Shown: positions 8,201-60,043 of the stretch, one piece after another | Layout of the letters: each line of letters starts with the position of its first letter | Numbering within the stretch: position 1 is the first letter of the stretch | DNA from: Dendrobates tinctorius | Taxonomy: Eukaryota | Assembly: GCF_039654945.1 (NCBI RefSeq) | Contig: NW_027361695.1 | Coordinates: 16,182,001 to 16,246,000, forward strand | DNA: 64,000 bases | Direction of reading: 5' to 3' | Program-made: the position numbers and the translations under genes | Notes under the pieces: model-generated | What the model saw: only the letters and a program-made list of their open reading frames with translations | Told to the model about the DNA's origin: nothing | Databases searched by the model: none

Positions 8201-8838
8201 GCAGCTGTGCCATCGAGCGTGTCACATAGCGCTCAGATATCAGTGGGCCGCACACAATCCACAAGTGTCCACTGTCCACAAGTGTACGCAGAGATTCAAA
8301 ATCTCCATTATCCTCTCGTCACTTTGGTCACAGGCAGCTGTGCCATCGAGCGTGTCACATAGCAGTCAGATATCAGTGGGCCGCACACAATCCACAAGTG
8401 TCCAGTGTCCAAAAGTGTACGCAGAGATTCAAAATCTCCATTATCCTCTCGTCACTTTGGTCACAGGCAGCTGTGCCATCGAGCGTGTCACATAGCGCTC
8501 AGATATCAGTGGGCCGCACACAATCCACAAGTGTCCAGTGTCCAAAAGTGTACGCAGAGATTCAAAATCTCCATTATCCTCTCGTCACTTTGGTCACAGG
8601 CAGCTGTGCCATCGAGCGTGTCACATAGTGCTCAGATATCAGTGGGCCGCACACAATCCACAAGTGTCCACTGTCCAAAAGTGTACGCAGAGATTCAAAA
8701 TCTCCATTATCCTCTCGTCACTTTGGTCACAGGCAGCTGTGCCATCGAGCGTGTCACATAGCGCTCAGATATCAGTGGGCCGCACACAATCCACAAGTGT
8801 CCACTGTCCACAAGTGTGTGCAGAAATTCTAAATCTCC
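5241..8838. repeat. Tandem array of about 27 x 133-bp units between the hAT promoter and the ATG
   Basis: The unit CATTATCCTCTCGTCACTTTGG...GAGATTCAAAATCTC repeats every 133 bp with only 0-3 substitutions per unit. Confidence 0.97.
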
Positions 8839-8915
8839 CCTGTCCTATAGACACCTTGTACCTTGTTTTACATTACTATATAGTTTGTTGGATTTTGTCT
8901 ACATTTCTACCAAAA

Positions 8916-11900: not shown

Positions 11901-12461
11901 CTTGACCTAATATTGGCTAATAAACAAGCAACTCTGGTAAATCGGTTGCTTGAGGCATTCCCAGCACACAGCAGCGGTGATGGTTCTCACACGAGCCGTA
12001 CGGGCCGGGGGCAGCTTGGCAGAGGTGTTCGTGGTGCACACAGCAGAAGTGGCGTTGGAGACAGGGGTTTCATGACAATGTTGTGGACTGATTTTTCAAA
12101 TACCGCTCACACAACTGGTAATACTGCATCGATGGAAAGTGACAGGAGACAGCAGTTGTCAACTATGGTTACAAACTACTTTTCCTCCCATATCGATGTT
12201 CTCCCACACAGGTCATTCCCCTTTGACTATTGGGCCGCTAAACTGGACACCAGGCCTGAATTGGCACAATATGCCTTACAGGAGCTCGCTTGCCCAGCTG
12301 CAAGTGTGCTATCGGAAAGAGTCTTCAGTGCAGCTGGATCAATCCTGACAGAAAAAAGGACCCGTCTGTCAACCCAAAATGTGGATGATCTAACCTTCAT
12401 TAAAATGAACCACGCATGGGTTTCCAAGGATTTTGTCCCACCTTCCCCTGATGACACATAG
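8916..12461 (+). CDS. hAT transposase (BED zinc finger, DDE core, hAT dimerisation domain), 1181 aa
   Basis: First ATG after the array (MRKAGGRG). BED finger SAVWHFF..CKKC..HLTSMH; HLTTDAWS, VVSDNGRN, CLAH, TRWNST; C-terminal CPAASVLSERVFSAAG..RTRLS. No stops or frameshifts. Confidence 0.93.
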   Translation: MRKAGGRGRGIGRGLAAGNDGVGGGSDGSGKSKIGPNAGGADPASSSGYIRPRTLSFLGVGKPLLKAEHQEKVLSYIADSASSSIASSSSVVKSKSTESSLEAHVHEPHLSLCPSPQPRLKDDAGHTTDYSMELFSHTMPGLSSQMVNYPGQDESDMECTDAQPLMDDSAGTFTQSTTLSSQCTEPDFDPDETQVPLPAHYTTIHGDTEKGAHDIEEEVMDDPVVDPDWHPLGEEGAASNSSDEEHPQQTSTSQQLLSGRPGALQRQVPNIKRVAGQLVKRVKRSQRARPQNVCQSRKSAVWHFFEQNPHDQAKVICKKCAKTFSRGKNLKNLNTSCMLRHLTSMHLQAWTQHQTSSATCATDHNEGSQQRYIVSPTVSPPVSTAANVEVSLQGHSSQGIPLLYQRKTDSRQSVRTPTPSPSSTLSQSALSTATSTICSSQVQLTLPDTMSRSRKYSVSHPRTLGLNAHIAKLISFEMMPFWLVESTAFRELMAYAVPRYDLPSRHLFSRKAIPALHHHVKDRIVHALKQSVRGKVHLTTDAWSSQHGQGRYVSITAHWVNVVDAGSTGDSGGGTVLPSPRYRKQLAVGVRPSSSSSSSRSDSSSTERSRTSTPSAAATVAHDVSPYRAASGKRQQAVLQMMCLGDRHTAEVLAEYLKRQTESWLGSVHLEAGKVVSDNGRNFVAAIALSKLSHIPCLAHTLNLVVQCFLKNYPELTALLQKVRRLCAHIRRSPVHSVRMQKLQRLLHLPNHRLIIDIATRWNSTLHMVERLCEQRQAIMHLWEDTRPGTLRADMELTGVQWSKLKDLCKVLQCFEECTRLVRADDAILSMSIPLMRLLMQTLTHLKEQASAANVDEEEEEEGILDDIQPLSAQGPLLDEVEEEEEEEEEDDGDDYLGEEDASRGASENVGVARSGTGFVRDWRDVDLPESALTPSTRSASLTPGTLAHMSDYALRILKRDPRIAKMMNDDDYWLASILDPRYKGKLQNIMPQENLDLILANKQATLVNRLLEAFPAHSSGDGSHTSRTGRGQLGRGVRGAHSRSGVGDRGFMTMLWTDFSNTAHTTGNTASMESDRRQQLSTMVTNYFSSHIDVLPHRSFPFDYWAAKLDTRPELAQYALQELACPAASVLSERVFSAAGSILTEKRTRLSTQNVDDLTFIKMNHAWVSKDFVPPSPDDT

Positions 12462-27160: not shown

Positions 27161-28543
27161 TCACACTCTGTCATCCTGCCAGTGTACTCTGCCTTGAGGT
27201 GACATAAAGTATAGTGCAAAATTGTCCCTCATTACTGAAACCGTCACAGAACTTCTAGTGGTAATGTCATGGTAATCTTGCAAGGTGGTTTCTTCAGAGG
27301 TGTCCTCAATGGAAATGGGTTCCTTGCAGATAACAAAAATGTGGAGTACCACGCACGCTTTGATCACCTCGTCCACAGTTTCTGTCTTGAGGTTGATCGC
27401 AGTCAATAGGACCCGCCATTTGGCTGTCAGAATACCAAAGGTACATTCAACCATTCTTCTTGCTCTTGTGAGGCGGTAATTAAAAATGCGTTTTGGTCTT
27501 GTCAATCCTCTGCTAGAGTACGGTTTCAAAAGGTGTTCTGACAGCTGGAAGGCTTCATCCCCTACACAGACAAATGGCATAGGTGGACCAGATGTTTGCG
27601 GCAGCGGTCTAGGTGGTGGGAAATGGAAGGTGTTTCCATACAGTTTACGCCCCATGGCAGACAGTTTGAAAACTTGAGAGTCATTGGAGCGGCCATAGGC
27701 CCCAATATCAACCGCAATAAATTTGTATTCCGCGTCAGCGATGGCCATGAGGACAATTGAAAAATATTTCTTGTAATTGAAATATTCCGATCCCGATCCA
27801 GCTGGCTTTACAATGCGGATATGTTTCCCGTCCACAGCGCCCAAGCAGTTGGGAAACTGACATATCTGTTGAAACTTGTCAGCAATTTCAATCCACCTCT
27901 CTGTTGTGGGCTCTGGTAAAAACTCTTCAGCTAAGGAGTCCCACAGTGCACGGCATGTGTACTTCACTATTCCAGATATGGTGGAAATCCCGAGTCTGTA
28001 CTGGAAATGCAGTGACGAAAGGGATTCTCCAGTTGCAAGAAATCTGTGGGGAATTAAAAAACAATAAATTAGTTTTAAATCACAGCATTACATACCAAAA
28101 CTGAGCTATAACACTTGGAGATACAAACTACCACCAACAAGATTGCAGTGAAAGTGTGCTCTGATGCGATCACATCCAATAAATGTGGCTTACCTTAAAG
28201 TCACCATCAGACGCTCTGTGGGTGAAACAGAGAAGCGGCAATAGGTGTCCGCTTTTCTTATGAGGTGTGCAATGCGCTCCACCAAGTAATCAAAATTCTC
28301 CATTTTCATCCTAACATATCCAAAAAATTTATCCGGGTTTCGTCGAAGGTCCATGCAGAGTGTAGAATAGACCCCACGCGTCATTCTCTTGGCTGTGACG
28401 GGGTGGATCCACAAACGTCGTCTACGATGCCTGATGCGCTGCTGTCTCGCTCTCTCCTTCTCCAGAACAATCACCCTCAAACGATTCGCCTCCGCTATAA
28501 AATCCGCCAAATTCTTCAAAATATTTCCAATGACAACATCCAT
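27161..28543 (-). CDS. Harbinger DDE transposase (HARBI1-like), 2 exons, about 410 aa
   Basis: Exons 28543-28194 and 28043-27161 join as VTLR/FLATG. Catalytic motifs GAVDGKH, VGDEAF and RRMVECTFG; open throughout; TATA-like element at about 28623. Confidence 0.92.
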
Positions 28544-44320: not shown

Positions 44321-47300
44321 CTATGTGTCATCAGGGGAAGGTGGGACCAAATCCTTTGAAACCCATGCATGGTTCATTTTATTGGAGGTTAGATCATCAA
44401 CATTTTGGGTCGACAGATGGGTCCTTTTTTCTGTCAGGATTGATCCAGCAGCACTGAAGACTCTTTCAGATAACACACTAGCAGCAGGGCAAGCGAGCTC
44501 CTATAAGGCATATTGTGCCAATTCAGAACAGGCGTCCAGTTTACAGGCCCAATAGTCAAAGGGGAATGACTTGTGAGGGAGAACATCGATATGGGAGGAG
44601 AAGTAGTCTGTAACCATAGTTGACAACTGCTGTCTCCTGTCACTTTTAATCGTTACAGTATTAGCAGTCGTGTGAGCGGTACTTGAGAAATCATTCCACA
44701 ACATGGTCATTAAACCCCTTTCTCCAGAGCCACTTCGGCTGTGTGCAACACGAACAACTCTTCCATTGTGCCCACTACGGCTCGTGGGAGAACCAGCACC
44801 GCTGTTGTGTGCTGGCAAAGCCTCAAACAAATAGTTTACCAGAGTTGCTTGTTTGTTAGTCAATATTATCTCTAGGTTCTCCTGTGGCATGATGTTGTGT
44901 AATTTGCCTTTGTAGCGTGGAACGAGGATGCTGGCCAGCCAGTAGTCATCATCCCTCATCATTTTGGCAATGCGGGGGTCCCTTTTTATGATCTGCAAGG
45001 CATAATCGCACATGTGGGCCAATGTTCCAGGTGTCAATGATGCACTGCCAGTGGTGGGTGGAGGAGCACTTTCTGGCAAATCCACATCCCTACAGTCACG
45101 CATAAACACTTTACCTGACCTTGGAACACCAACATTTTCTCTTGTCCCCTGAGAAGTATCCTCCTGCCCAAAATAATCATCCTCCTCCTCCTCCTCCTCT
45201 TCCTCTTCTTCCTCCACCTCGTCCATGACAGTTCCCTGACCAGACAATGGCTGACTGTCATCAAGGCTTCCCTCCTCCTCCTCCTCTGCTGCAGATGCCT
45301 GATCCTTAATGTGTGTCAAACTTTGCATGAGCAGATGAAAAAGTGGGATGCTCATGCTTATGGTGGCGTTGTTTGCGCTTACCAGCCGTGTGCATTCCTC
45401 AAAATACTGAAGGACTTAACAGAGGTCTTTCAGCTTTGACCACTGCACACCCGACAATTCCATGTCTTCCCTCAAACTGCCTGCCCGTGTATCCTCCCAC
45501 AAATGCATTACAGCCTGCCTCTGTTCGCACAGCCTCTCAACCATGTGCAGGGTGGAGTTCCACCTTGTTGCAAAGTCTATGACTAGGCAGTGCTTGGGGA
45601 GGTGGAGCAATCGCTGCAGCTTCTGCATACGAGTGGAGTGGATGTTTGAGCGACGGATGTGCGAGCACAGTCTTTGCACCTTATGGAGCAGGGATGTTAA
45701 CTCCGGATAATTATTAAGGAAGCACTGCACCACCAGGTTGAAAGTGTGAGTCAGGCAAGGTATGTGTGTGAGTTTTGCACGGGCTATGGCTGCCACAAAA
45801 TTACGGCCATTATCACTGACTACCTTGGCTGCCTCAAGATGTAGACTGCCCAGCCATGACTCAGTTTGTTGCTGCAAGTAGTCGGCCAGTCCCACCGCGG
45901 TGTGTCTGTTGTCACCCAAAGACATCATCTTTAACACAGCCTGCTGACGCTTACCACTAGCTGTTCCTTAGTGGGACACCTCGTGTGCAACACTGCCAGC
46001 TGTGGATGGAGTGCTCATGTGACTGCGCTCTGTGGACAAGCTTTCGCTGATAGAGGAGGAGGATCGAAAGCCTACAGCCAACTGTTTCCTATACCGTGGG
46101 CTAGGCAACACTGTTCCACCGCCGCTGTCCCCAGTGGAGCCGGCATCCACCACAATAACCCAGTGCGCAGTGATGGACATGTAGTGGCCTTGGACATGCC
46201 TACTGGTCCATGCATCTGTTGTGAGGTGCACCTTTCCACTCACTGACTGTTTTAGTGCATGGACAATGCGGTCTTTCACATGCCGGTGGAGGGCAGTGAT
46301 GGCTGTTATGAATGAGTCACCGTAGGAGGCAAAAACAAAAATACTAGCTAAGTCCAGAAAACCAGAGAAGTTGGCAGCTATCGGATTGCAGACCCCTGAA
46401 CCTATCAACAACAACTAGCAGTTGCCGTGGGGGGTTCTTACGGTGCCCTAGACCCCTCGATCACAGCCAGAGAACTAAATAGCCTAAATACAGAAAGGGA
46501 AATCTACACTGCCCCAGAGCAGACCCCAAAGCAATAGGCAGCCCCAACATAAAATGACGGTGAAGCAAGATGAAAAAACACTCACACAGATAGAAAGATA
46601 GGCTGAGCAAATGATGGGGCCCAAGCTAACTAAATAGGACAGGATAGAAAAGCTGCTGTCTGCAATCCGCCAAAACCCTATCAAAACAAGAGCCAACAGA
46701 CTGATAGGGAAAAAAGCCCTGAAGACGCTAGGCTTCAAAAAGACTATATCAGTACTCAGGTATTTTCTGAAGACAGAGCAGAAGGAATTCAGCTCACCCC
46801 AGCAGGGAATGGCAGAAATCCAGAAAAACAAGGCAAAACAAAACCAAAACACAAATGCAAAAAGCAGAGCAGAAAACTTAGCTTTTGAGGAGCAGGAATC
46901 AGACTGGTCTCCTAGAATCCCTCTGAGAAATCACCAGCAAGGCAGAAGGGCGTCGGCTGCCTTATATCCAGTCAGCAATTCCAGTCACCCAGTCATCATC
47001 ATCCTGCTCAGGTGCTTGGTAATTAGCCTCACTACCTTCCTTCACCAGAAGAGGGAGTTCATCAGACCTCAATGGTGAAGGGGAAAATGAACTCACAACA
47101 GATGGCTTTTCGAGAAAAGAAGTGCCGACTTGTTAGGTCATAGTGTGGGACAGCGTAGGCCATGAAGTCGCGGAAAGCTTTGCTTTCAACCAAACGGTAG
47201 GGCATCATCTCTAGTGAGATTAGTTTGGCAATGTAGGCGTTCAAACAAAGTGTACGCGGATGAGAGGATGAGTATTTTCTTGTCCTACTGAGAGTGTCTG

Positions 47301-48650
47301 GTAGGGTGAGCTGGACTGGAGAGCTGCATATGGGGGAGTAGCGGTGGACCGGACTGAGTGAGAGGGGGTTGGTGATGGTATTGGTGGTGATGACATAGAT
47401 TCAGTGTTGTGTTGCAAAACTATTGCGATTCCCTGAGTGCTTTGGCCTTGCGACGACACCTCCACATTTAGTGCTGGTGGTGTGCTTAACGGTGGCGGTG
47501 GTCTTACACTGGGGGAAGCGATGGAGCGTTGCTGGCTACCTTCAGTTGGAGCAGGTGCACATGTGCTACCTGAGGTTTTGTAGTCCGTCCACGCTTGCAA
47601 GTGCATGTTGATTAAATGTCTAAGCATGCAACTGGTATTCAAATTTCTGAGTTGTTTACCTCGGCTAAAGGTCCTTTCGCACTTCTTACAGGTAACCTTT
47701 GCCTCATCAGTAGGATTTTGGACAAAGAAGTGCCACACTGCACTCTTCCTACTATGGTAAACATTTTCTGGCCTTGCACGCTGTGCTAAGTTGACCGTCT
47801 GGCAAAGCTGTCCTGCAACTCTTTTAGTTTTTGTTCCACGTTTTTGGACAGCTACGGGCGTGGTAGATAACCGCTGCTGCGATGTCAATACCTGCAGCGG
47901 ATCCTTCTCCTTATCTGAACTATTGCCAGCGCCACCCTCCTCCCCCAATGGATGCCAATCCAGGTCAAGAACTGGGTCATCCATCACCTCCTCTTCAAAG
48001 TCATCTGCACCTTCCTCTTTACCTTCCTCTGTGTCACCGTGTAAGGTGGTATAGTATGCGGGAAGGGGCACCTGAGTTTCATCAGGGTCAGATTCTGGCT
48101 CAATAGACTGCGAGGGCAATGTAGTGCTCTGGGTCGATGTACAAGCAGAATCATCTAGCAGTGGCTGTGCATCACTGCACTCCATGTCAGATTCATCTTG
48201 GACTGGGGAATTCTGGATTTGACTGGATAACCCAGGCATGGTATGTGAAAAGAGCTCCATAGAGTAATCTGAAGTTTGGGCTGCCGCATCTTTAACTTTT
48301 GGTGGGGGTGAAGGACACAAGGAAAGGTGCTTTTCCTGACCAGAACCCTGCACTGACGACTCCGTGCTTGCAGGTTTCGAACGTTCAGAAGAGGAGGCAA
48401 TAGAGCTGGTGGCTGTTTCGGCAATGTACGCTAAAACCTGTTCCTGATGCTCTGGCTGTAAAAGTGGTTTTCCTACTGCAAGAAAAGGCAACCTTACAGG
48501 CCTTTTTGGGCCAGATGATGATGCAGGCTCAACACCTCCTGTCTTAGCTGCTATTGTGCTTTTGCCAGAACCAGTCGATGCAACACCACCATCAGTACCA
48601 GCTGCACCCCCCTGCCCACGTCCGCGGACTCTTCCACCATACTTCCTTAT
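44321..48650 (-). pseudogene. hAT transposase pseudogene
   Basis: Colinear with 8916-12461 (BED finger CERTF/HLINMH, HLTTDAW, VSDNGRN, TRWNST, PSPDDT*). Start codon reads ATA; stops/frameshifts present; interrupted by a solo LTR. Confidence 0.93.
46304..47100. mobile_element. Solo LTR (797 bp) inside the hAT transposase pseudogene
   Basis: Termini TGTTATGA...TCACAACA; 6-bp target duplication GATGGC at 46298-46303 and 47101-47106; the transposase sequence resumes on both sides. Confidence 0.85.
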
Positions 48651-49993: not shown

Positions 49994-51560
49994 CAGTCAT
50001 GGCCAAAAGTTTTGAGAATGACACAAATATTATATTTTCACATGATCTGCTGCCCTCTGGTTTTTATGTGTGTTTGTTAGATGTTTTTATCACATACAGA
50101 AATATAATTGCAACAATATTATGAGTAACAAAAGGTTATATTGACAGTTAGAATGAGTTAATGCAGCAAGTCAATATTTGCAGTGTTGACCCTTCTTCTT
50201 CAGGACCTCAGCAATTCTCCCTGGCATGCTCTCAATCAACTTCTGGATCAAATCCTGACTGATAGCAGTCCATTCTTGCAAAATCAATGCTTTTATTTTG
50301 TCTGAATTTGAAGGTTTTTGTTTGTCCACCTGTCTCTTGATGATTGACCACAAGTTCTCAATGGGATTAAGATCTGGGGAGTTTCCAGGCCATGGTCCCA
50401 AAATCTCTATGTTTTGTTCCCTGAGCCATTTAGTTATCACCTTTGCTTTATGGCAAGGTGCTCCATCATGTTGAAAAAGGCATTGTTGATCGCCAAACTG
50501 CTCTTGGACGGTTGGGAGAAGTTGCTCTTGGAGGACATTCTGGTACCATTCTTTATTCATGGCTGTGTTTTTAGGCAAGACTGAGAGAGAGCCCATTCCC
50601 TTGGCTGAGAAGCAACCCCACACATGAATGGTTTCAGGATGCTTGACAGTTGGCATGAGACAAGACTGGTGGTAGAGCTCACCTCGTCTTCTCCGAATAA
50701 GTCGTTTTCCAGATGTCCCAAACAATCGAAAAGGGGATTCATCAGAGAAAATGACTTTACCCCAGTCCTCAGCAGCCCACTCCCTGTACCTCTTGCAGAA
50801 TATCAGTCTGTCCATGATGGTTTTTCTGGAGAAAAGTGGCTTCTTTGCTGCCCTCCTTGAGACCAGGCCTTGCTCCAAGAGTCTCCGCCTCACAGTGCGT
50901 GCAGATGCACTCACACCTGCCTTCTGCCATTCCTGAGCAAGCTCTACACTGCTGGTAGCCCAATCCCGCAGCTGAAACACTTTTAAGAGACGGTCCTGGC
51001 ACTTGCTGGTCTTTCTTGGGCGCCCTGGAGCCTTTTTGGCAACAAGGGAACCTCTCTCCTTCAAGTTCTTGATGATGAGATAGATTGTTGACTGAAGTGC
51101 AATCTTTCTAGCTGCGATACTCTTCCCTGTTAGGCCATTTTTGTGCAGTGCAATGATGACTGCACGTGTTTCTTTAGAGATAACCATGGTTAACAGAAGA
51201 GAAACAATGATGCCAAGCACCAGCCTCCTTTTAAAGTGTCCATTGGTGTCATTCTTACTTAATCATGACAGATTGCTCTCCAGCCCTGTCCTCATCAACA
51301 CCCACACCTGTGTTAATGGAGCAATCACTGAAACGATGTTAGCTGGTCCTTTTAAGGCAGGGCTGCAATGATGTTGAAATGTGTTTTGGGGGATAAAGTT
51401 AATTTTCTAGGCAAATATTGACTTTGCAAGTAATTGTTGTTAAGCTGATCACTCTTTATAACATTCTGGAGTATATGCAAATTGCCATTAGAAAAAAAGA
51501 AGCAGTAGACTTTGTAAAAATTAATATTTGTGTCATTCTCAAAACTTTTGGCCATGACTG
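49994..51560 (-). mobile_element. Full-length Tc1-superfamily DD35E element (Traveler/TR-like), 1,567 bp
   Basis: Perfect TIRs of about 38 bp (CAGTCATGGCCAAAAGTTTTGAGAATGACACAAATATT) with TA on both sides. Confidence 0.95.
50171..51187 (-). CDS. Intact Tc1-like transposase, 338 aa, DD35E
   Basis: MVISKETR.. HTH region, GRPRK, IFSDES, FQHDGAPCH and WPGNSPDLNPIE; 35 residues between the second D and the E; no stops. Confidence 0.93.
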   Translation of the reverse strand: MVISKETRAVIIALHKNGLTGKSIAARKIALQSTIYLIIKNLKERGSLVAKKAPGRPRKTSKCQDRLLKVFQLRDWATSSVELAQEWQKAGVSASARTVRRRLLEQGLVSRRAAKKPLFSRKTIMDRLIFCKRYREWAAEDWGKVIFSDESPFRLFGTSGKRLIRRRRGELYHQSCLMPTVKHPETIHVWGCFSAKGMGSLSVLPKNTAMNKEWYQNVLQEQLLPTVQEQFGDQQCLFQHDGAPCHKAKVITKWLREQNIEILGPWPGNSPDLNPIENLWSIIKRQVDKQKPSNSDKIKALILQEWTAISQDLIQKLIESMPGRIAEVLKKKGQHCKY

Positions 51561-53220
51561 TAGTATATATGTAGTATGTATGTATTATGTAGTATGTATG
51601 TATGTATGTTGTATGAATGTAGTATATATGTAGTATGTATGTAGTATTTATGTATGTTGTATGAATGTAGTATATATGAAGTATGTATGTAGTATGTAGT
51701 ATGTATGTATGCTGTATGAATATATATGCAGTATGTATGTAGTATGTATGTAGTATGTATGTTTTTATTTTTTTTTTTACATTCAACACATTAGCCGGAT
51801 GATGGGACTACTACTGTCCCATCATTGGCTAATGTGTCAACCACTGTCATTGTAGCAGGCATAGCCCGATGGGACTTGTAGTACCATCGGACGATGCCTG
51901 CACACACACACAACCCCCGGCAGCCCCACACAGACCCCCGGCAGCCCGAATAGACCCCCGGCAGGTCTGCACAGACCCCCGGCAGCCCGCACAGACCCCC
52001 GGCAGGCCCGCACAGACCCCCGAGAGGCCCATACAGACCCCGCCCGCACACACAGACATGCACAGTGTCCGCCCATGCACCTCCCACACTCTTCCCCCCT
52101 CCCGAACTGGATGTGCAAGTAAAGAAAGGGGTTTTTTAATTCCAATATTTCTGTCCCATTAACTTGCATGGGTTTCCTGTATCGGAATCGGCGATACCCG
52201 ATACTTTTTGGGTATCGGTCCGATCCAATCCGATCCGATATTTCCCGATATCGGAAAGTATCGCTCAACACTAGACAGCACTCTAAGGTGTATGTCTGGA
52301 AAAACTCCTCGGCTTTTTTTTCCAGAGTCACACACAGATAGCTTCTATTTGTCCGTGATACAAGGCGGTACACGGTAGTGTGTGAGGAGCGTACACCGCT
52401 ATACGGTGTCTGTATGGAAAATTGTCAATCTCCGTCTATTTGTATAGGGACTGACACACGCTGTCTCTGTCTAGTTTTGACCGTCATCAAACAGCAGATA
52501 TACGAAACTGTTTGAAAAGCGGACAGCACTTTAAGGTGTAGATCTGGAAAAACGGAAAAACTCCTCGGCTTTTTTTTCCAGAGTCACACCCAGATAGCTT
52601 CTATTTGTCCGTGATACCAGCCGGTACGCGGTAGTGTGTGAGGAGCGTACACCGCTATACGTTGTCTGTATGGAAATTTGTCAATCTCCGTCTATTTGTA
52701 TAGGGGCTGACACGCTGTCTCTGTCTAGTTTTGACCATCATCAAACAGCAGATATACGAAATTGTTTGAAAAGCGGACAGCACTCTAAGGTGTAGATCTG
52801 GAAAAACGGAAAAACTCCTCGGCTTTTACTTCCAGAGTCACACCCAGATAGCTTCTATTTGTCCGTGATACCAGCCGGTACACGGTAGTGTGAGAGGAAC
52901 GTACATCGCTATACGGTGTGTGAAAAAATGAACGCTCAGTAACTCACCAGGACAAAATAATATAAGTTGGAGTGCTTTGAAAAAAGCAGTTTGAACAGCA
53001 GTGTGCACACAGCAATGCAGCTAGCAGGTAGCCTTAAAAGGTAGCCTAATCACCACCAGCACTGCTGCATGCAACAAAAATCCTCCCCTTTCACTGCACA
53101 CTAACTGTACAGTGAAAAGCACTATCAGCAGAAGCAGTTTTTTTTTTCTTCTACCCTGCCTAACGCTCTCCCTGTTCAGAATCAGCAGCAGCACCTCTCC
53201 CTATTCTAAGATCGTCAGAA

Positions 53221-53370: not shown

Positions 53371-54289
53371 AGAAAAGGCGCTGGAAGCATTATCTGAAAC
53401 GTGACTTTGGCGCTCTGATCGGTGACCTCATGGCCGACCTCACGCTATGGTCGGGTTTCGATCGGCGAAACCGTGACTTTAGCTAAAGTTGGCTATTTTT
53501 GAATTTGACCCATATGGCTCAACTCTAGTCAACAGATATATTTTGGTGATATGGTGCAGTGGCATAATTTATTTGCTTCGGATGAAAACAATACAGTATG
53601 TTTCTACTGTAAGGATTTGTACTCAGTTAGGTGCAGTAGGAGGAAAAACAGGAGGCGTGCTTCTTTAAAAGAGTCTGTGTGGGTTTAATTGCCCCATAAA
53701 CCTCAAAGCAACAACACAAGGTAACCGGCCTTCACAGCAGGCAAAAGCAACACAAAACAGTCCTTAGCTGGGCTTTGTTCCCTCTGGCCCTGTGAGCACA
53801 CAGACTAGGGCAATGTCCAGCCCGGAGGCTCTGTCGATCCATACACACAGGAGGCCTTCTTCCTCCCAAGTTACAGACCATGTGCTAAACCACAGCCTAC
53901 ATTATGTAGGCTGTAACAGCACCCATAGGTGAGGTATGGATCACATGGGCTGGTCACATTGTCATGACCTCACTGCAGGTCCTCAAACACCTGCAGTTCC
54001 TGAAGGAAAACAGGGGTACAGTGAGCACCCTCACCCAGAGGTGTGGTAATATGGGTAGCCAGACCCTCCCATCTCTCATATCTACCCACAACCCGGACCC
54101 AGGTGCACTAAACAACATCTTTAGTGCTCATGTGCACTAAAGACAAAATACTCCGGGTTGCATCGGAGGGAGCATCCATACCTGTCCCATATACCTTCCA
54201 TTAACCACGTGACTACCAATCACACCACATATTCCCTCCCTCTGCCAAAAAATGGGGGGCTTGGCACCTTCCATTAACAGACCAGAGAC

Positions 54290-55315
54290 TCTTCTCTGTC
54301 GTCTCTGACAGTTAAACGGTCTGTCAAAGTTGGGCCCTGCTACTGAACCCTTTTGAAGGCGTCCGTCATCCGACTCTGTCACGTCCTTTGATAGGGATGC
54401 CCCCTTGTCAGACCACCCGCATCCGCAGCGGTCAGTATGTAGGCATAATTCCCTTGCACCCATACGTCTTGTCTGGACTGACTCCTTGTCATTTCGACCA
54501 CTACAGGGTCTCCCGCTTAGGTCACTCAACCCTGAGCTAACTGAGGCATCACTGCTTCTACTTCTTCCATCAGGCCACCTTCTGTTATCTCTCTGCTGTC
54601 CATTTCTCCCATGGTCTTTATTGCCTGGAGAGCAGTCCTTCCATCTCTCCCTTTGTGCTCTATTATCTCCAGTTTGAGGACTTCCAGTCTTATGCGAACC
54701 TCTTTGCCTCTCTATACCACGTGTTGAAGGCGGGCAGCCATCTTCTTCTCATTACCTGCAGCTCTCTGTTGATCTGCTCCCTCTCAAGTCTTAGCTGCTC
54801 TACTTCTTTCAGGTATGCCACACGATACTCCCAAGGCCCTCTATGGATCCGACGAGTAATGGAACCATCCCATCTTCACCCACGACCTGGGCTTTGTTAT
54901 CAGCCGGAATCCTCACTCTCATCACACCGGACCTATTCACCATCTCCTGCATTACTTTCCCAAGTCTTACAATGACTTTCCTCACCAGACCTTTGGACAC
55001 TTGAATGATGTCCTCCACAAAGCCCAGCCAACTTTGTGCTTTCCTCGCCTGCTCCAGACATCAAGCGGCTTCATTATTTCTCAACATGATCATCTGTTTT
55101 GTGCAGCGGCATTGTAGGTGCATGTCCCTCAGGATAGCCACCCGCTTCATTGTGACTTCCTTAGTCGAAAGTAGGACCAACTGCTTTGTCTCTGGTGCCC
55201 AGTTCACACTACATGCTTCTACGGCCTTTCTAAAGGCCTCATGGAAATCCTCACTGGCACACGCTTCTCGCATGTCTTCAGGTACCTCTATTATGCACTT
55301 GAAAACTGAAGTCTC
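54290..55315 (-). pseudogene. FXR1: Captured intronless FXR1/FMR1-family segment (KH0, KH2, NES helix, C-terminal tail) inside the LTR element
   Basis: FKCIIEVPEDMREACA..KRVAILRDMHL..RNNEA, FVEDIIQV..KVI..GKVMQEMVNRSGVMRVRI..EDGMVP, EYRVAYLKEVEQLRLER and QRDNRRWPDGRSRS..VTESD match recalled FXR1 blocks in order. One stop and small frameshifts are present. Confidence 0.85.
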
Positions 55316-56000
55316 ACCTTCTTGGCCAAACTGTTGGACCTCCTCTTCCTGAGCGTCAGTGCAGTTTTCCAAGACATTGATGTCCCTTGTATGGCCCTCT
55401 GTGTGGCACTTCCCCTGCTGGACTTCTTCCTCCGTGGAGGCCCCTTCTTTAGTCAGCCTCTCCAGCTCACTCTCTTTCATTGTGATCAGACAGAGAGAGC
55501 ACGACAGTTCGATTTCCCAGTCATCTGTGTGTTTCTGGAGCTGGGCATTAGCCTCCTTCTCTATCTTGAGCTCTCGGAGAACTTTATCCCGCTCCTGTGC
55601 CAGGCAGCGACGCTCATCTTCTCTCCAGAGAAGTTCCTGCTGATGCTTCGCTTGCGCCTCTCTGAGCACCTCCATATCTTTGAATAAGGCCTTGTTCATG
55701 GTTTGACACTCTGACAGGTGACCTCTGAGCTCAGAGACTTCCTTCTCCAGCTCATCCATTCTGTGCTCAACCGCTTGTCTCAAGACCCTTTCTTGCTCGA
55801 CATGCTCTTTCACTGTCTCTTTAAGCTGCTCTATCTCGTGATCCTGCTCTCTTTTGGACAGCACGTGTCACACCATCAGTTGTTTAATCAGATTTTCAGA
55901 TGGGCTCTCTTGCCCACCCATACTCTGCCTCTTCAGAGCTCCACCTGTTCCTGCATCCGCCTCTATGGTCTCAGTAACTTCAGAGAACTACAGCTCTTCA
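55316..56000 (-). pseudogene. Coiled-coil coding segment in frame with the FXR1-derived region; origin unknown
   Basis: The N-terminal part of ORF 55061..55864 is E/K/R/L/Q-rich with heptad character and shares a frame with ORFs 55988..56539 and 54809..55018. Confidence 0.55.
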
Positions 56001-56624
56001 GCATCAGGTACTCTGGAGCCTTCATGATACTGAGCCATTTCACCCTTCCCTGGCATCGCAGATGTGGGTGTCCCACAGATCTGTGTTAATTCCAGCCCAT
56101 CACCAACTACCTCTGTGCTGGGGTTTGTCAGAGATAAGGTGACCTCCTTATCAAGGACAATAGCTGGATCTGCACCTGACCCTGTCTCTCCCACATCCTT
56201 CTGCTGAGAGGGTGTAGCCTGTCCCGCCTTGCCGCGGCCCCTACGGCGAGAGGAAGATCTGCCATTTTTACTCGGCTCCACCTTACTGCACACTCTTTCC
56301 CTTGCATTCGAGTCACAGTCTGAATTGGAGTCACCCCCACTCTCCCTGTCATCCTGGAACAGCAAGTCCTCACTTAAAATGGTGTCGGACCCCTTTTCTG
56401 GAGTTACCCCGTTTCTCACGGTCCCACGTTTGGTCACTCCAGCTAAATTCCCAAGTTGGTCAGACCCACCCTTTCTTCCGGTCACCCGGAACTCTGGACT
56501 ATCTACCTTAGGTAGTGCTACCTCCTTTTTATACATCACACCACCGGAACCACTACAGCCACCTGCTGTGGTGGGGCTCCCTTAGGGTCATTCCGGCTTC
56601 CCCCTGAGCAATCAGGCACTCCCC

Positions 56625-56895
56625 TTTCTTCCCACAAATCCCAAAACCATTCAAAGTCCTGGCCTATTACTACAGGGTATGGCAAGTATGGGATTACAGG
56701 GACATCATCGCTGGAAAAAATAGTGGGCGTCTCAATGATTACCCTGGACACTGGATAATCCCTAGCAACCCCATGAACGCAGTGGACTTCCATCTTCCTT
56801 CCGGGAATCAGATAGACAAAGAGTGTGGTGCTCACCAGGGTCACCGGGCTCCCTGAGTCTAGAACTCCAGTCATGCACTCTCCATTGACTTCTAC
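56625..56895 (-). pseudogene. Retroviral-type aspartic protease domain
   Basis: VEVNG..VLDSGSPVTLV..CVHG..YP..LPYPVVIGQDF in ORF 56536..57126. Confidence 0.85.
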
Positions 56896-58722
56896 AGAAC
56901 AACTCTGTGGCAGCTTGTCAGATGGAAAGTCAGCACAACATCCTGGACATGCGTTGTTCGAACATTGAACCCGGCAACAGTCCGTCGGCGCATTCACCGC
57001 CAACCCTTTTTGGGTTACCGCCCCATTTTGGGACTCCACCCCCTTTTGGGTCACCGCCCCCTTTTGGGACTCAATCCCTTTTTGAGCCATCATCCCTCCT
57101 TGAGGTGCATGCCATGGACTCCCCATGTCCCTCTATAGGCCCTTCACCGCCTGAACAATCTACCTGCCCCAACAGTTCCTCACAGCGAGGCTCCTCACTG
57201 TTCTACTATGTCAACTCACCAGCTCCTGCAGGTGCTACAGTTACTGCTGCTGCATAACCTCTTGTTGCAACTGCTGCCGCAATTGCGGCAGAACCTCTTG
57301 CTGCAAGGCTCCACACTGGCTCTGCACTGCAAGGCTCCGCACAGCTCTACACAGCTCTGCAAACCTCCAGATGGCTCTGCGTTGAGGATGTTTACCACCT
57401 TCGTAACCCCGCCGAGTTTCCGCCAGAAGCTTTCAGTCTTCATGGCCCTGCCGAGCCACAGCAAGCTAAAGTTGGAAAAATTTCTTGGACCCGCAGATCC
57501 ACAGCAAATCTTCTTGACCCCACCAAGCCACAGCAATCACCTCCATGCATGCTTAGTGGACCGTTGCCCGCAGTCTAGCACCAACTGTAAGGATTTGTAC
57601 TCACATAGGTGCAGTAGGAGGAAATACAGGAGGCATGCTTCTTTAAAAGAGTCCAGGTGGGTTTATTTGCTCAATAAACCCCAAAGCAACAACACAATGT
57701 AACTGGTCTTCACAGCAGGCAAAAGCAACACAAAACAGTCCTTAGCTGAACTTTCTTCCCTCAGGCCCTGTGAGCACACAGGCTAGGGCAATGTCCAGCC
57801 CGGAGGCTCCATCTTGAGCCATACACACAAGAGGCCTTCTACCTCCCAAGTCACAGACCATGTGGTAATCCACAGATCCATTATGTAGGCTGTAACCACA
57901 CCCACGGGTGAGGTATTGATCACATGGGCTGGTCACATTGTCATGACCTCACTGCAGGTCCTAAAACACCTGCAGGTCCTGAAGGAAAACAGGGGTACAG
58001 TGAGCACCCTCACACAGAGGTGTGGTAATATGAGTAGCCAGACCCTACCATCTCTCATAGCTACCCAAAACCCGGACCCAGGTGCACTAAATGACATCTT
58101 TAGTGCTCATGTGCACTAGAGACAAATTACTCCAGGTTGCATAGCAGGGAGCATCCATCCCTGTCACATATACCTCCCATTAACCACGCGACCACCAGTC
58201 ACACCACACAATGAATACCTGTAATCTGAGCTTTATATAAATTCTGAATATTGTCTATTGTAAAAGTTTTCCCAGTAACTGCGTTGCAAAAAAAAAAAAA
58301 GCTCACACTCACGTATGGTCACGGTAAAAGACATCTTAAAACTTCTGTAACTTTATTTACTGTAATTCACTGACTGTTTCCACTGGTTTGGATCGAGACA
58401 ATGGCAGTTATGTGTCACATTTTGTTACAGTCTTGGTGACCAAAGTAATGAGACCATCAATCACTCACCCTTCCAGGGTGAGTAAAAATGTAAGCAATTT
58501 GTATAATAGTCATAAGGAGAATCCGCCAGAGTTTCAGCACAACAGAGCAGAATGCTCACAAAATAATCTTTTACAGGCAAGACCCATAGAAAGGCAAAAC
58601 ACAGAATGAAGATTCAAGCTTGTAAAAAAAGGGTTTATTGCTGCTGGAAAAAAGGAACAGGAGGAAAGGCAAACTTGTCAAAGTGATACAAATAGATAAA
58701 TCATGAATAATGATTATACAAA

Positions 58723-60043
58723 GAGAGATGAGTGGATTGATCCACGGTGGATCGAGTACAAGTCGAATTTCCTGAAACTTCTTGCTGCACGTGAATTTGA
58801 AAATTTTGAGTTTTGATTAGAGGTTCACAAAAAAAAACATTGCACATCACCTTCTCTCACAGTGCTGAAGTAACAGATATTGGGCTAATGTTATTTTGTG
58901 TTGCTGTTCTGGCCTCCCCATAATGCCCAGCAGCTGTGACATCTTACAGATTATCACAACTTGTACAGTGGTGGTCAGTATTGCGGCTATGACAGATCAA
59001 TGGTTTCCAGTGGTGCACATTTGTATGGCAGAGTCATTTTCCATCTTCCGAGTTACTGCGTGTCTCTGTCTCCTGTAGAATGTAGGCTCTTATGGTCAAC
59101 TGGGTCCTCTCTTTCTCTTCTGTAGAGTGTAAGCTCTTATGGTCAGCGGAGTCTTCCCTCCATCCCGCTCTCTCCCTCCTGTAGAGTGTAAGCTCTTAAG
59201 GTCAGCGGAGTCTTCCCTCCATCCTTCTCTCTCTCTCCTATAGAGAGTAAGCTCTTATGGTCAGCATGGTCCTCCCTCCCTCTCCTTTAGAGTGATAACT
59301 CTTATGGTCAGTGGGGTCCTCTCTCTCTCCATTATAGTGTAAGCTCTTATGGTCAGCAGGGTCCTCCCTTCATCCCTCACTCTCTCTCTGTCTCCTGTAG
59401 AGTGTAACCTCTTATGGTCAACAGGTTCTTCCCTCCATCCCTCCCTCTCTCTCTGTCTCCTGTAGAGTGTAAACTCTTATGGTCATCAGGGTCCTCCCTC
59501 CATCCCTCCCTCTCTCTCTCTCTGTCTTCTGTAGAGTGTAAGCTCTTATGGTCAACTGGGTCCTCTCTTTCTCTTCCGCAGAATGTAAGCTCTTATGGTC
59601 AGCGGAGTCTTCCCTCCATCCCGTTCTCTCCCTCCTGTAGAGTGTAAGCTCTTAAGGTCAGCGGAGTCCTCCCTTCATCCCTCCCTCTCTCTGTCTCCTG
59701 TAGAGTGTAAGCCCTTATGGTCAACGGCGTCCTCCCTCCATCCCTTCCTTTCTCTCTGTCTCCTGTAGAGTGTAAACTCTTATGGTCAGCAGGGTCCTCC
59801 CTCCATCCCTCCCTCTCTCTCTCTGTCTTCTGTAGAGTGTAAGCTCTTACGGTCAGCAGGGTCCTCCCTCCCTCTCTCTCCTATAAAGTGTAAGTCTTTA
59901 TGTTCAGCAGGGTTATCTCTCACTCTCGTCTTTGCCACGTTTATTTTCCGAGGCATTAGAAGCTTTCCAGTATTAAGAATCATACAAATTATTTGCTACA
60001 AGTCAAATTTTTGCAGAAACTTCCGTGGATCCGCTCATCTCTA
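58723..60043. mobile_element. Old hAT MITE containing a minisatellite
   Basis: Ends GAGAGATGAGTGGAT / ATCCGCTCATCTCTA; no TSD retained. Confidence 0.5.
59066..59920 (+). repeat. Minisatellite of about 45-65-bp units derived from an L2 3'-UTR motif
   Basis: Roughly 15 copies of TGTAGAGTGTAAGCTCTTATGGTCAGCAGGGTCCTC followed by a variable CT-rich tract. Confidence 0.85.

Follow-up and report, generated by a model that had tools for sequence, protein, structure and literature searches.

A family of LTR retroelements carrying a captured, domain-deleted FXR1 sequence in poison frogs and their relatives

How did an FXR1-like sequence come to lie between two LTRs in the genome of Dendrobates tinctorius, and does it belong to a mobile family or to a single dead chimera? 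The locus lies within the window, that is, the whole stretch of 64,000 nucleotides analyzed here, which contains no N. An LTR pair of about 620 bp, a PBS and a PPT enclosing 3.36 kb without RT or integrase had been proposed in the initial annotation, and this description held, except that the PBS is only a PBS-like site (Table 1). The two LTRs have TG..CA ends and are 91% identical (K2P 0.0945), and parts of the 5' LTR are 76-88% identical to LTRs of two relatives (L001 and L006). PBS-like sites following the 5' LTR were homologous in all relatives and best kept as TGGTGGAGAATGCGGGCAT (L001, L005); the primer may be an Ala-like tRNA. All relatives also have a G-rich tract at the PPT position.

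Table 1. Features of the window copy, listed in the direction of the element
Feature	Position	Strand	Remarks
5' LTR	57586..58208	(-)	623 bp; TGTGGTG at start, CTTACA at end; direct repeat with 53608-54229
PBS-like site TGGTGCTAGACTGCGGGC	57566..57583	(-)	2 nt downstream of 5' LTR
Leader hairpin array	57403..57531	(-)	four units (57531-57514, 57502-57485, 57459-57442, 57420-57403); 7-bp stem, GGCG-type tetraloop; partly decayed
Cys-rich stretch and retropepsin-like domain	56539..57132	(-)	open; frame differs from remaining ORF
12-aa repeats (36 nt, tandem), coding QKG(A/V)..ESQKGAVTQ	57000..57084	(-)	TRF period 36, 2.4 copies; ORF start
Linker	55991..56581	(-)	Arg-rich motif SSSRRRGRGK at 56257-56228
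Long helix / coiled-coil segment	55538..55867	(-)	preceded by in-frame stop 55868-55870; a/d heptad spacing in VEHRMDELEKEVSELRGHL
KH0, FXR1-derived	55064..55303	(-)	Pfam KH_9; followed by in-frame stop 55061-55063
KH1-loss junction	55022..55060	(-)	about 59-60 codons absent
KH2, FXR1-derived	54812..55021	(-)	short FXR1-type loop; stop 54809-54811
NES-helix block (YLKEVEQLRLE...)	54693..54830	(-)	FXMRP1_C_core match; separate frame
FXR1 C-terminal tail, diverged	54244..54748	(-)	colinear with intact 1178-aa ORF of L006
PPT AGAGGGAGGGAA	54232..54243	(-)	directly upstream of 3' LTR
3' LTR	53608..54229	(-)	622 bp; pairs with 57586-58208

On the minus strand, the enclosed sequence is a broken ORF, and no gag, RT or integrase profile was detected in any frame. 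Four ORFs reported to share one frame do so, because each ends at a coordinate equal to 1 mod 3, and the suggestion of a formerly continuous ORF reaching the PPT was also supported: the frame of the tail remains open beyond the PPT and ends inside the 3' LTR at a stop (54137-54139), and the single ORF of intact relatives likewise extends into the LTR. Besides the stops listed in Table 1, the linker contains one at 55988-55990, and a frameshift relative to intact copies falls between about 56540 and 56600; the NES-helix block is read in another frame, which implies a frameshift on each side. With three frameshifts and several stops, the window copy is dead. It is decayed and about 19 My old. 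However, no TSD was visible around it (ATTG vs GTAG), so it may be a recombinant of two copies, in which case its age is overestimated.

The resemblance to FXR1 proposed in the initial annotation was confirmed by profile, structure and tree. The window KH0 matched Pfam KH_9, the KH0 domain of FMRP (E=5.6e-23; 81.6 bits, cut-off 24.2), and, among PDB sequences, the FMRP structures 4ova/4qvz (E=7.5e-17). Matches of the other parts were weaker: the NES helix scored 25.5 bits against FXMRP1_C_core (E=2.5e-5), under the cut-off of 29.6, and the KH2 piece reached only E=0.06 against KH_1, for which the threshold was met in the intact proteins P0007, P0005 and P0048. The tail of the Anomaloglossus element scored 58 bits against FXMRP1_C_core and also matched exons of host FXR1 (L007, 32272 and 35414). 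Phylogenetic analysis grouped all element FXR modules as a single clade (100/99) whose sister is FXR1 (100/98), separate from both FXR2 and FMR1; the captured gene is thus FXR1. The donor species remained unresolved because FXR1 was represented in the tree solely by one Ranitomeya imitator sequence. This single clade, together with DNA homology between the retropepsin-like and linker regions of the window and of Anomaloglossus (65.6% over 816 nt), supports a single capture of FXR1.

An intronless, domain-deleted capture had been claimed, and both properties held. Host FXR1 (L007) has introns of 0.9-1.2 kb between the exons for amino acids 227-276, 277-307, 308-346 and 347-403, and 3 kb separates two of its C-terminal exons; in the elements, all these exons are joined seamlessly. 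The FXR1 part is a copy of a processed mRNA, extending from within the exon in which KH0 starts to near the C-terminus. Both the Agenet domains and KH1 are missing from the window module. The borders of the KH1 deletion are identical across dendrobatid copies, whereas KH1 is retained in Anomaloglossus (L005, P0011 and P0012).

That the element is a mobile, non-autonomous family also held. LTR-flanked copies of the same architecture, with intact ORFs of 734-1178 aa, were found in D. tinctorius, R. imitator and R. variabilis; these ORFs are continuous, follow the part order of the window and run through the PPT into the 3' LTR. In total, six LTR-flanked copies occupy unrelated loci in four frog species. 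Their LTR pairs are 98.5-99.8% identical (K2P 0.002-0.013), their TSDs measure 4 bp (CCCT and CTGC being the clean cases), and insertion ages of copies with young LTRs are 0.3-2.6 My. For one D. tinctorius subfamily alone, 11 protein models are annotated, with identities of 95.8-99.4%. Seven copies were examined, representing at least four species and at least five subfamilies, and in every one the interior measures 2.8-3.9 kb and is filled entirely by the ORF. Within the sequences searched, the family appears limited to Dendrobatoidea (poison frogs and their sister family). For context, the youngest LTR class in D. tinctorius consists of ERV1 elements (PMC11152451).

Two other explanations can be judged against these data. 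First, the locus could be an isolated, dead chimera or resemble FXR1 only by chance, as the broken window copy without a TSD might suggest; the strength of the KH0 match, dozens of related proteins and the six related loci all but exclude this. Second, a host gene family of domesticated FXR1 retrogenes might have been segmentally duplicated and merely lie between LTR-like repeats. NCBI does label the family proteins 'fxr1-like' or 'uncharacterized', and their dN/dS is below 1. However, each copy is enclosed by a pair of nearly identical LTRs of its own with TG..CA ends and has a PBS, a PPT and 4-bp TSDs, the sequences around the copies are unrelated to one another (a 32-bp satellite, (AT)n, introns of other genes), the ORF extends into the LTR and the insertions are only 0.3-2.6 My old, which makes this explanation very unlikely.

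The history of the family can be followed in its parts. In an ancestor, one fusion ORF took the place of the gag-pol interior in a retrovirus-like element. The front of this ORF is element-derived, namely the 12-aa repeats, the Cys-rich stretch, the retropepsin-like domain and the Arg-rich linker. The repeats also occur in L005 and at the N-termini of P0001, P0003, P0004 and P0007, the Cys-rich/retropepsin-like region of the window has a homologous counterpart at the corresponding place in family members, and the linker with its Arg-rich motif is kept as far out as Anomaloglossus. Later, on the dendrobatid branch, KH1 disappeared through an in-frame deletion and a heptad-spaced helix of about 75 residues was added; this helix is missing from Anomaloglossus, and no homologs of it were found outside the family. 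The family split into several subfamilies, with insertions within the last 0.3-2.6 My.

Selection on the ORF was analyzed between intact subfamilies. The FXR module had a dN/dS of 0.24-0.41 (dS 0.46-0.84), with bootstrap confidence intervals of 0.15-0.64 and none of 1000 replicates reaching 1. The KH0-KH2-NES module is under purifying selection, and the result that would have refuted the initial annotation, a single copy with neutral dN/dS, was not obtained. Values were 0.23-0.69 for the helix segment and close to neutral (0.8-1.0) for the C-terminal tail in several pairs. With an omega of about 0.3, the ORF is under moderate selection, much looser than would be expected for host FXR1; the estimates are limited by partial saturation of dS and by the crudeness of NG86 as an estimator.

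Structural predictions agreed with these assignments. The AF2 model of an intact relative had an overall pLDDT of 81, exceeding 90 in both KH0 and KH2, and its best Foldseek matches were KH1-KH2 and KH0 of FMRP: KH0 superposed on FMRP KH0 at 1.1-1.2 A, and KH2 matched the fold of FMRP KH1-KH2 (2qnd) with E=2e-10. The GXXG of KH2 is present in all intact copies; the window has VRLG at this position (54970-54959). In the model of L006, the helix segment forms one 75-residue helix (pLDDT 95-98).

The protease assignment, by contrast, held only at the level of motifs. The window has DSG at 56859-56851 and IGQD at 56667-56656, but no Pfam, PDB-sequence, profile or fold comparison matched the retropepsin-like stretch significantly; its profile lies in register with the active site of M-PMV protease, yet with E of about 2. 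Its identity is thus not statistically confirmed. In intact copies, the catalytic D-S-G is replaced by DPG, DSE, DSK, ESE or DSR, and the intact ORF of P0005 begins downstream of the site. Self-release by protease is therefore not a general feature, and the proposed release of the FXR1 part by the element's own protease is disfavored.

The hairpin unit of the leader recurs in the leaders of all relatives, in 1-5 copies each. Double compensatory changes were observed at three of the seven stem pairs, and half of the leader matches to the loop motif (19/38) had all seven pairs, vs 2/1069 elsewhere; the covarying hairpins are confined to element leaders. GACG tetraloop hairpins serve packaging and heterodimerization in alpha- and gammaretroviruses, including the defective Harvey sarcoma virus (PMC516450). 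By this analogy, and as an inference from sequence, the array is a candidate packaging or dimerization signal, with a packaging role likely.

On balance, we lean towards a helper-dependent LTR retroelement family that took up FXR1 cDNA by transduction and relies on the resulting fusion protein. In this view, the element would be transcribed from its LTR, its RNA would provide in cis the signals that reverse transcription and packaging require (PBS, PPT and the GGCG-tetraloop hairpin array), and a related autonomous element would supply gag, RT and integrase. No such element was found: the search for a partner, which included no DNA-level search of frog genomes, returned family members only. 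To spread, the element would itself require the fusion protein, which would most likely act as a multimerizing RNA-binding protein that binds its own transcript and may stabilize it or escort it into helper particles. This cis-RNP or packaging role is proposed by analogy, without expression, protein or RNA-binding data.

The roles initially suggested, RNA-localization factor or anti-silencing decoy, likewise remain inferences without functional data. As a decoy, the truncated FXR1 of the same family could act dominant-negatively against host FXR1/FMRP-linked RNA granules or small-RNA silencing, shielding element or helper RNAs. The region for FXR homo- and heterodimerization reportedly lies within KH0 (Siomi 1996), and FXR proteins are linked to Argonaute/piRNA pathways and virus replication complexes. 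In favor of this possibility, the Agenet domains and KH1 were lost yet KH0, KH2 and the NES helix were kept under selection, and host FXR1 is still present and looks intact. However, the added coiled coil, Arg-rich linker and leader hairpins suit RNA handling at least equally well, and a decoy acting in trans would aid every competing element, which predicts weaker selection on each copy's ORF. The two roles cannot be separated on present data.

It is also conceivable that a replication-competent complex retrovirus carries the ORF as an accessory gene and that the copies are internally deleted derivatives of this virus. The rv-cyclin of walleye dermal sarcoma virus is such an accessory gene. 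The element-derived ORF front (repeats, retropepsin-like domain) and the retrovirus-like LTR, PBS, PPT and leader hairpins would fit, and since no helper was identified, a full-length form with both gene sets is not excluded. We consider it unlikely, as the interiors of the seven copies leave no space for gag-pol-env and the shared junctions suggest that the short form itself replicates.

For the preferred helper-dependent family, the closest known systems include the replication-defective v-onc transducing retroviruses such as Harvey sarcoma virus. In these, gag-pol has given way to a processed host cDNA that is joined in frame to what remains of the viral coding sequence; LTR, PBS, PPT and the packaging hairpins of the leader are retained, and a helper is needed. 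GACG-type tetraloop hairpins mediate co-packaging with that helper (PMC516450). However, v-onc viruses are exogenous, somatic and short-lived, carry growth genes and are selected via cell transformation, whereas the frog family is germline, predates the Dendrobatidae/Aromobatidae split, has diversified into subfamilies, carries an RNA-binding protein and has hairpins with a GGCG tetraloop, repeated in tandem 1-5 times. In plants, Bs1 of maize and other LTR retrotransposons are likewise non-autonomous, with RNA-captured host gene fragments and a hybrid ORF (PMC13317346). Bs1 is low-copy, and none of its three transduced gene segments is a full-length ORF, according to a review (PMC13317346); the frog family instead carries one large multi-domain block from a single gene, with intact predicted folds and purifying selection, and has multiplied in several vertebrate species. 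ETn/MusD and VL30 of the mouse are non-autonomous LTR elements mobilized in trans, and ETn/VL30 interiors are non-coding. ETn/VL30 share with the frog family an LTR, PBS and PPT without gag-pol and mobilization by a related autonomous element (inferred for the frogs), but the latter encodes a conserved protein of about 730-1180 aa. LINE-1 ORF1p would resemble the frog protein in function only, combining a coiled coil, an RNA-binding domain and a basic region in a retroelement that must mark its own RNA; there is no homology, and cis-preference in the frogs is only inferred. The frog family appears to have kept its captured FXR1 piece in working order, and to have gone on multiplying, over tens of millions of years, which is rare and, in vertebrates, apparently undescribed. 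Compared with host FXR1, the module retains KH0, KH2 with GXXG and a short loop of the FXR1 type, the NES helix and some of the C-terminal core, but lacks Agenet/Tudor domains, introns and, in dendrobatids, KH1, and is fused to element-derived sequence. Its identity to FXR1 is 37-42% in dendrobatids and 50-59% in Anomaloglossus, and in the tree the element stem branches are about 10 times longer.

A phmmer search of 1.84 billion representatives with a 268-aa coiled-coil and KH0 piece returned 42 matches, and the top nine displayed the whole architecture of the window copy rather than FXR1 proper. All nine shared the same order of 12-aa QKG repeats, a protease (PR)-like domain, an Arg-rich linker, a coiled coil, KH0, KH2, the NES helix and a tail, with KH1 missing. 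They were unbroken ORFs (734-999 aa as annotated) and came only from Dendrobates tinctorius, Ranitomeya imitator and R. variabilis; one D. tinctorius subfamily comprised 11 protein models on different scaffolds with 95.8-99.4% identity. At the six related loci fetched (L001-L006), every ORF was free of introns and lay between its own LTR pair, starting approximately 0.5 kb 3' of the primer binding site (PBS) and extending across the polypurine tract into the 3' LTR. Divergence within these LTR pairs (K2P 0.0017-0.013) corresponded to 0.3-2.6 My at the D. tinctorius rate (PMC11152451). The window copy was much more diverged (91% identity between its LTRs, K2P 0.0945), which gave an age of about 19 My when this rate was applied. 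Its closest relative was the D. tinctorius locus L006 (81.5% over 1226 nt).

The identification of the captured part as FXR1, which the initial annotation had made, proved to be correct on the basis of Pfam KH_9, FMRP structure matches and a phylogenetic tree. First, KH0 of the window copy matched KH_9 (E=5.6e-23; 81.6 bits, cut-off 24.2) and the N-terminal structures of FMRP (4ova, E=7.5e-17). The remaining blocks of this decayed copy gave lower scores: FXMRP1_C_core fell slightly below threshold on the NES helix (E=2.5e-5), and the KH2 piece matched KH_1 only weakly (E=0.06). In three related proteins (P0005, P0007 and P0048), KH2 reached the threshold with an intact GXXG motif, and the model of the intact L006 segment gave a fold match to 2qnd. 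No Agenet match was found by Pfam in any member. Second, the maximum-likelihood tree placed all element modules in one clade (100/99), with FXR1 as its sister (100/98) and with FXR2 and FMR1 falling elsewhere. Since FXR1 was represented by only one sequence (R. imitator), the donor species remained unresolved. Similarity to FXR1 started at approximately aa 243-262 of the FXR1 protein P0010, which is within the exon encoding aa 227-276 and not at an exon border. In R. imitator, the host FXR1 gene (L007) encodes aa 227-276, 277-307, 308-346 and 347-403 in separate exons with introns of 0.9-1.2 kb, and two C-terminal exons are 3 kb apart. All of these exons were joined seamlessly in the elements; thus, the FXR module was derived from spliced mRNA. 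These results show that FXR1 cDNA was transduced once and became fused to leftover coding sequence of the element. The frog module falls outside the FXR1 orthologue group, as it has neither Agenet domains nor introns and is joined to other sequence.

KH1 was absent from all dendrobatid copies, whereas it was present in the element of Anomaloglossus baeobatrachus (Aromobatidae; L005, 7530-12747). This element had the same LTR, PBS, leader, repeat, PR-like and linker front as the window copy (65.6% nucleotide identity over 816 nt), retained KH1 and a full or near-complete FXMRP1_C_core (58 bits), and had no coiled coil. Because this front is common to Anomaloglossus and dendrobatid elements, the chimera is older than the divergence of these two frog families, and the KH1 deletion and the gain of the helix were later than its formation. 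The crown of Dendrobatidae has been dated to about 36 My (PMC11152451). In the tree, dendrobatid (100/100) and Anomaloglossus (100/99) elements were reciprocally monophyletic with long stems. The analysis as a whole shows long persistence, diversification and recent insertion of a non-autonomous LTR family. Exon skipping was considered as the cause of the KH1 loss, since the missing block is close in extent to the exon for aa 347-403 of P0010 (57 aa). The gap is not exon-exact: the first codon of this exon is retained (LEC in L006), whereas the next exon lacks about 3-4 codons. As the borders are off the exon and KH1 is still present in Anomaloglossus elements, this explanation was rejected. 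The deletion borders were identical across all dendrobatid copies. For the coiled coil, no homolog beyond the family was found among the 1.84 billion representatives; two candidate outside homologs, P0018 and P0029, were rejected as fragments of family members. The Anomaloglossus element sits within a gene model bearing acyltransferase domains, and its repeat, PR-like and main ORFs occupy three different frames.

The window sequence is free of N, and the structural features of the window copy are listed in the table below. Both the window copy and the six related loci had direct LTR pairs with TG..CA termini. No tRNA gene, with which the PBS could be matched, was found in the window or the fetched loci, and an Rfam search of the window gave no matches. 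A target site duplication (TSD) was absent at the window copy (flanks ATTG and GTAG). Relatives carried 4-bp TSDs, namely CCCT (L001, R. imitator), CTGC (L005), ATAT (L002 and L006) and TACT/TACC (L004). The ATAT duplications lie in low-complexity, AT-rich DNA. The R. imitator copy is inserted in a long array of a 32-bp satellite (unit approximately CTGTATATATACACTGCACAGTACCACTCCCC, at 7814-8324 and 13513-17809 of L001), and its TSD is unambiguous because of this context. Pfam detected no domain of gag, RT, RNase H or integrase in any frame of the 3.36-kb interior of the window copy, and none in the intact relatives; therefore, the element is non-autonomous. Regarding reading frames, the initial annotation had assigned four ORFs of the window copy to a common frame. 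This assignment held, and the ORFs of the PR-like region and the NES helix lie in other frames. The KH2 GXXG position of the window copy reads VRLG.

Coordinates of the LTR element, its lesions and DNA-transposon ORFs in the window
Feature	Position	Strand	Remarks
5' LTR	58208-57586	minus	623 bp, direct repeat; starts TGTGGTG, ends CTTACA
PBS-like site	57583-57566	minus	TGG-initiated 18-mer, 2 nt downstream of 5' LTR; tRNA complementarity not established
Leader hairpin units	57531-57403	minus	four, decayed; window copy
Frameshift	between ~56600 and 56540	minus	comparison with intact copies
In-frame stops	55988-55990, 55868-55870, 55061-55063	minus	comparison with intact copies
Stop	54809-54811	minus	comparison with intact copies
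Frameshifts on both sides of NES-helix block		minus	comparison with intact copies
Polypurine tract AGAGGGAGGGAA	54243-54232	minus	directly upstream of 3' LTR
3' LTR	54229-53608	minus	622 bp, direct repeat; starts TGTGGTG, ends CTTACA
DNA-transposon ORFs	8538-12461; 47241-48491; 50171-51220; 27161-27967	plus; minus; minus; minus	

Comparison of natural intact copies from five subfamilies revealed that the KH module is under purifying selection. Nei-Gojobori dN/dS for KH0, KH2 and the NES helix was 0.24-0.41 (195-198 codons, dS 0.46-0.84), with bootstrap intervals of 0.15-0.64 and no replicate reaching 1; values were 0.23-0.69 for the coiled coil and 0.4-1.0 for the tail. As the insertions are young, the differences between subfamilies arose mostly in active lineages. 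GXXG was retained in all intact copies. For the intact segment of L006, AF2 (pLDDT 81) modelled a 75-residue helix (pLDDT 95-98) and, after a disordered spacer, KH0, then a long helix that spans the KH1 scar, followed by KH2 and the NES helix. The top Foldseek matches of this model were FMRP KH1-KH2 (E=2e-10) and FMRP KH0 (rmsd 1.1-1.2 A).

The protease proposed in the initial annotation was supported only in part: its motifs are present, every statistical test failed, and the region cannot be filed as a retropepsin. D-S-G and I-G-(R/Q)-D motifs lie approximately 65 residues apart in the window copy and in two related proteins (P0007 and P0055), within an all-beta region followed by a helix after GRD. 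Neither Pfam (window piece and five intact proteins) nor phmmer against PDB gave a significant retropepsin match. A family profile searched against PDB placed the M-PMV protease active site in register at a non-significant E-value (1.9-2.1), and the AF2 model of the domain from a 9-sequence alignment (pLDDT 48) had no Foldseek match at E <0.5. In other intact copies D-S-G was replaced by DPG, DSE, DSK, ESE or DSR, and the ORF of P0005 begins downstream of the domain and lacks it. Self-cleavage is thus not a general feature of the family, and the most plausible interpretation of the region is a remnant of the pro gene of the parent element. The L006 subfamily of D. tinctorius (protein P0048) carries two tandem PR-like modules with linkers (aa ~185-300 and 352-470); DSG is replaced by ESE in one of them and by DPG in the other.

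In every copy, a conserved array of 1-5 tandem hairpin units lay between the PBS and the ORF, with a period of approximately 39 nt (dendrobatids) or 49 nt (Anomaloglossus). Each unit consisted of a 7-bp stem with a GGCG tetraloop, followed by GAAG. Three stem versions were observed (GTGGA/TCCAC, GTAAC/GTTAC and GTGGC/GCCAC), with double compensatory changes in three of the seven stem pairs. Although 98% of cells pair, this figure is partly so by construction; in an unbiased count, all seven pairs formed in 19 of 38 leader loop-motif matches, compared with 2 of 1069 elsewhere (250 kb, both strands). The exact motif was absent from viral and metagenome collections. In alpha- and gammaretroviruses, GACG tetraloop hairpins take part in packaging and helper-defective heterodimerisation (PMC516450). 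The frog array, with its GGCG loop, 7-bp stem and 1-5 units, resembles the GACG-capped paired stem-loops of gammaretroviruses but does not match them. A role as a packaging signal is an inference. The hairpins, the 4-bp TSDs and the fact that ERV1 is the youngest LTR class in D. tinctorius (PMC11152451) together point to a class I ERV-like parent, which is also an inference. In L006 the ORF starts farther upstream, within the leader, and a hairpin unit (L006 10055) is translated.

How the family is mobilised can only be inferred. Trans-mobilisation by an unseen helper, an autonomous relative, would be required, and such a helper has not been found: a word-indexed protein search that used both PR-like modules of P0048 as queries returned family members only, and searches with full-length P0005 and with its FXR module gave few clusters, the full-length search being swamped by low-complexity words. 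The fusion protein might be a multimeric RNA-binding factor favouring the fate of its own RNA, which is untested. The main rival explanation is that it acts as a decoy on host FXR/Argonaute pathways; neither the decoy nor the RNA-binding role has been tested. A bolder version of the RNA-binding reading, which we consider possible while leaning slightly against it, is that the family is a gag-pol-less parasite of a parasite. It would survive by means of an FXR1-derived coiled-coil KH protein that attaches to its own RNA, the GGCG array being a possible site, followed by either delivery into helper particles or shielding from FXR/Argonaute-linked silencing. If true, this would represent a new route, by host-gene transduction, to a Gag- or ORF1p-like function, kept across the poison-frog radiation.

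Gene transduction by LTR elements is already known from oncogenic retroviruses and plants, and the frog family operates in the manner of transducing helper-dependent retroviruses or of maize Bs1. What is unusual here is a long-lived, amplified family in a vertebrate germline that holds a conserved captured host RNA-binding module under selection and is still inserting. We found no description of FXR1 in poison-frog transposons in the literature searched, although absence there is not proof of novelty. As a natural experiment, the combination of KH0, KH2 and the NES helix without Agenet or KH1 can show which domains of FXR1 are enough for an RNA-centred function, and the family offers a tractable case of non-autonomous elements competing for a helper.

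Caution is also needed with current annotations, since NCBI models label the family variously ('uncharacterized', 'fxr1-like', 'FMR1 homolog' or 'restin homolog') and contain false introns in at least two cases (P0048 and P0004). In XP_073425164 (999 aa; L006 10001-13537, D. tinctorius) and XP_077155914 (893 aa; L003 10001-12748, R. variabilis), in-frame or frame-changing 'introns' were cut from continuous ORFs of 1178 and 915 aa, respectively. A further model, P0056 (R. imitator, 813 aa), is chimeric: its last ~120 residues are element linker (89% identical to P0005), attached to repetitive coding sequence that is unrelated.

The window is rich in DNA transposons with long open frames, typical of TE-rich dendrobatid genomes. 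One ORF encodes a 1307-aa hAT transposase with a BED zinc finger and a hAT dimerisation domain, and another also has a BED finger; a Tc1/mariner DDE_3 transposase and an ORF of the Harbinger type (DDE_Tnp_4) are present as well. Just beyond the element, at 59060-59500, lies an array of at least eight units of 45-65 nt with the core CTGTAGAGTGTAAGCTCTTATGGTCAGC and CT-rich runs between them. On the other side, approximately 0.7 kb past the low-coordinate end of the element (53608), a 169-nt direct repeat (52500-52668 and 52754-52922) shows 94% identity at a spacing of 254 nt.
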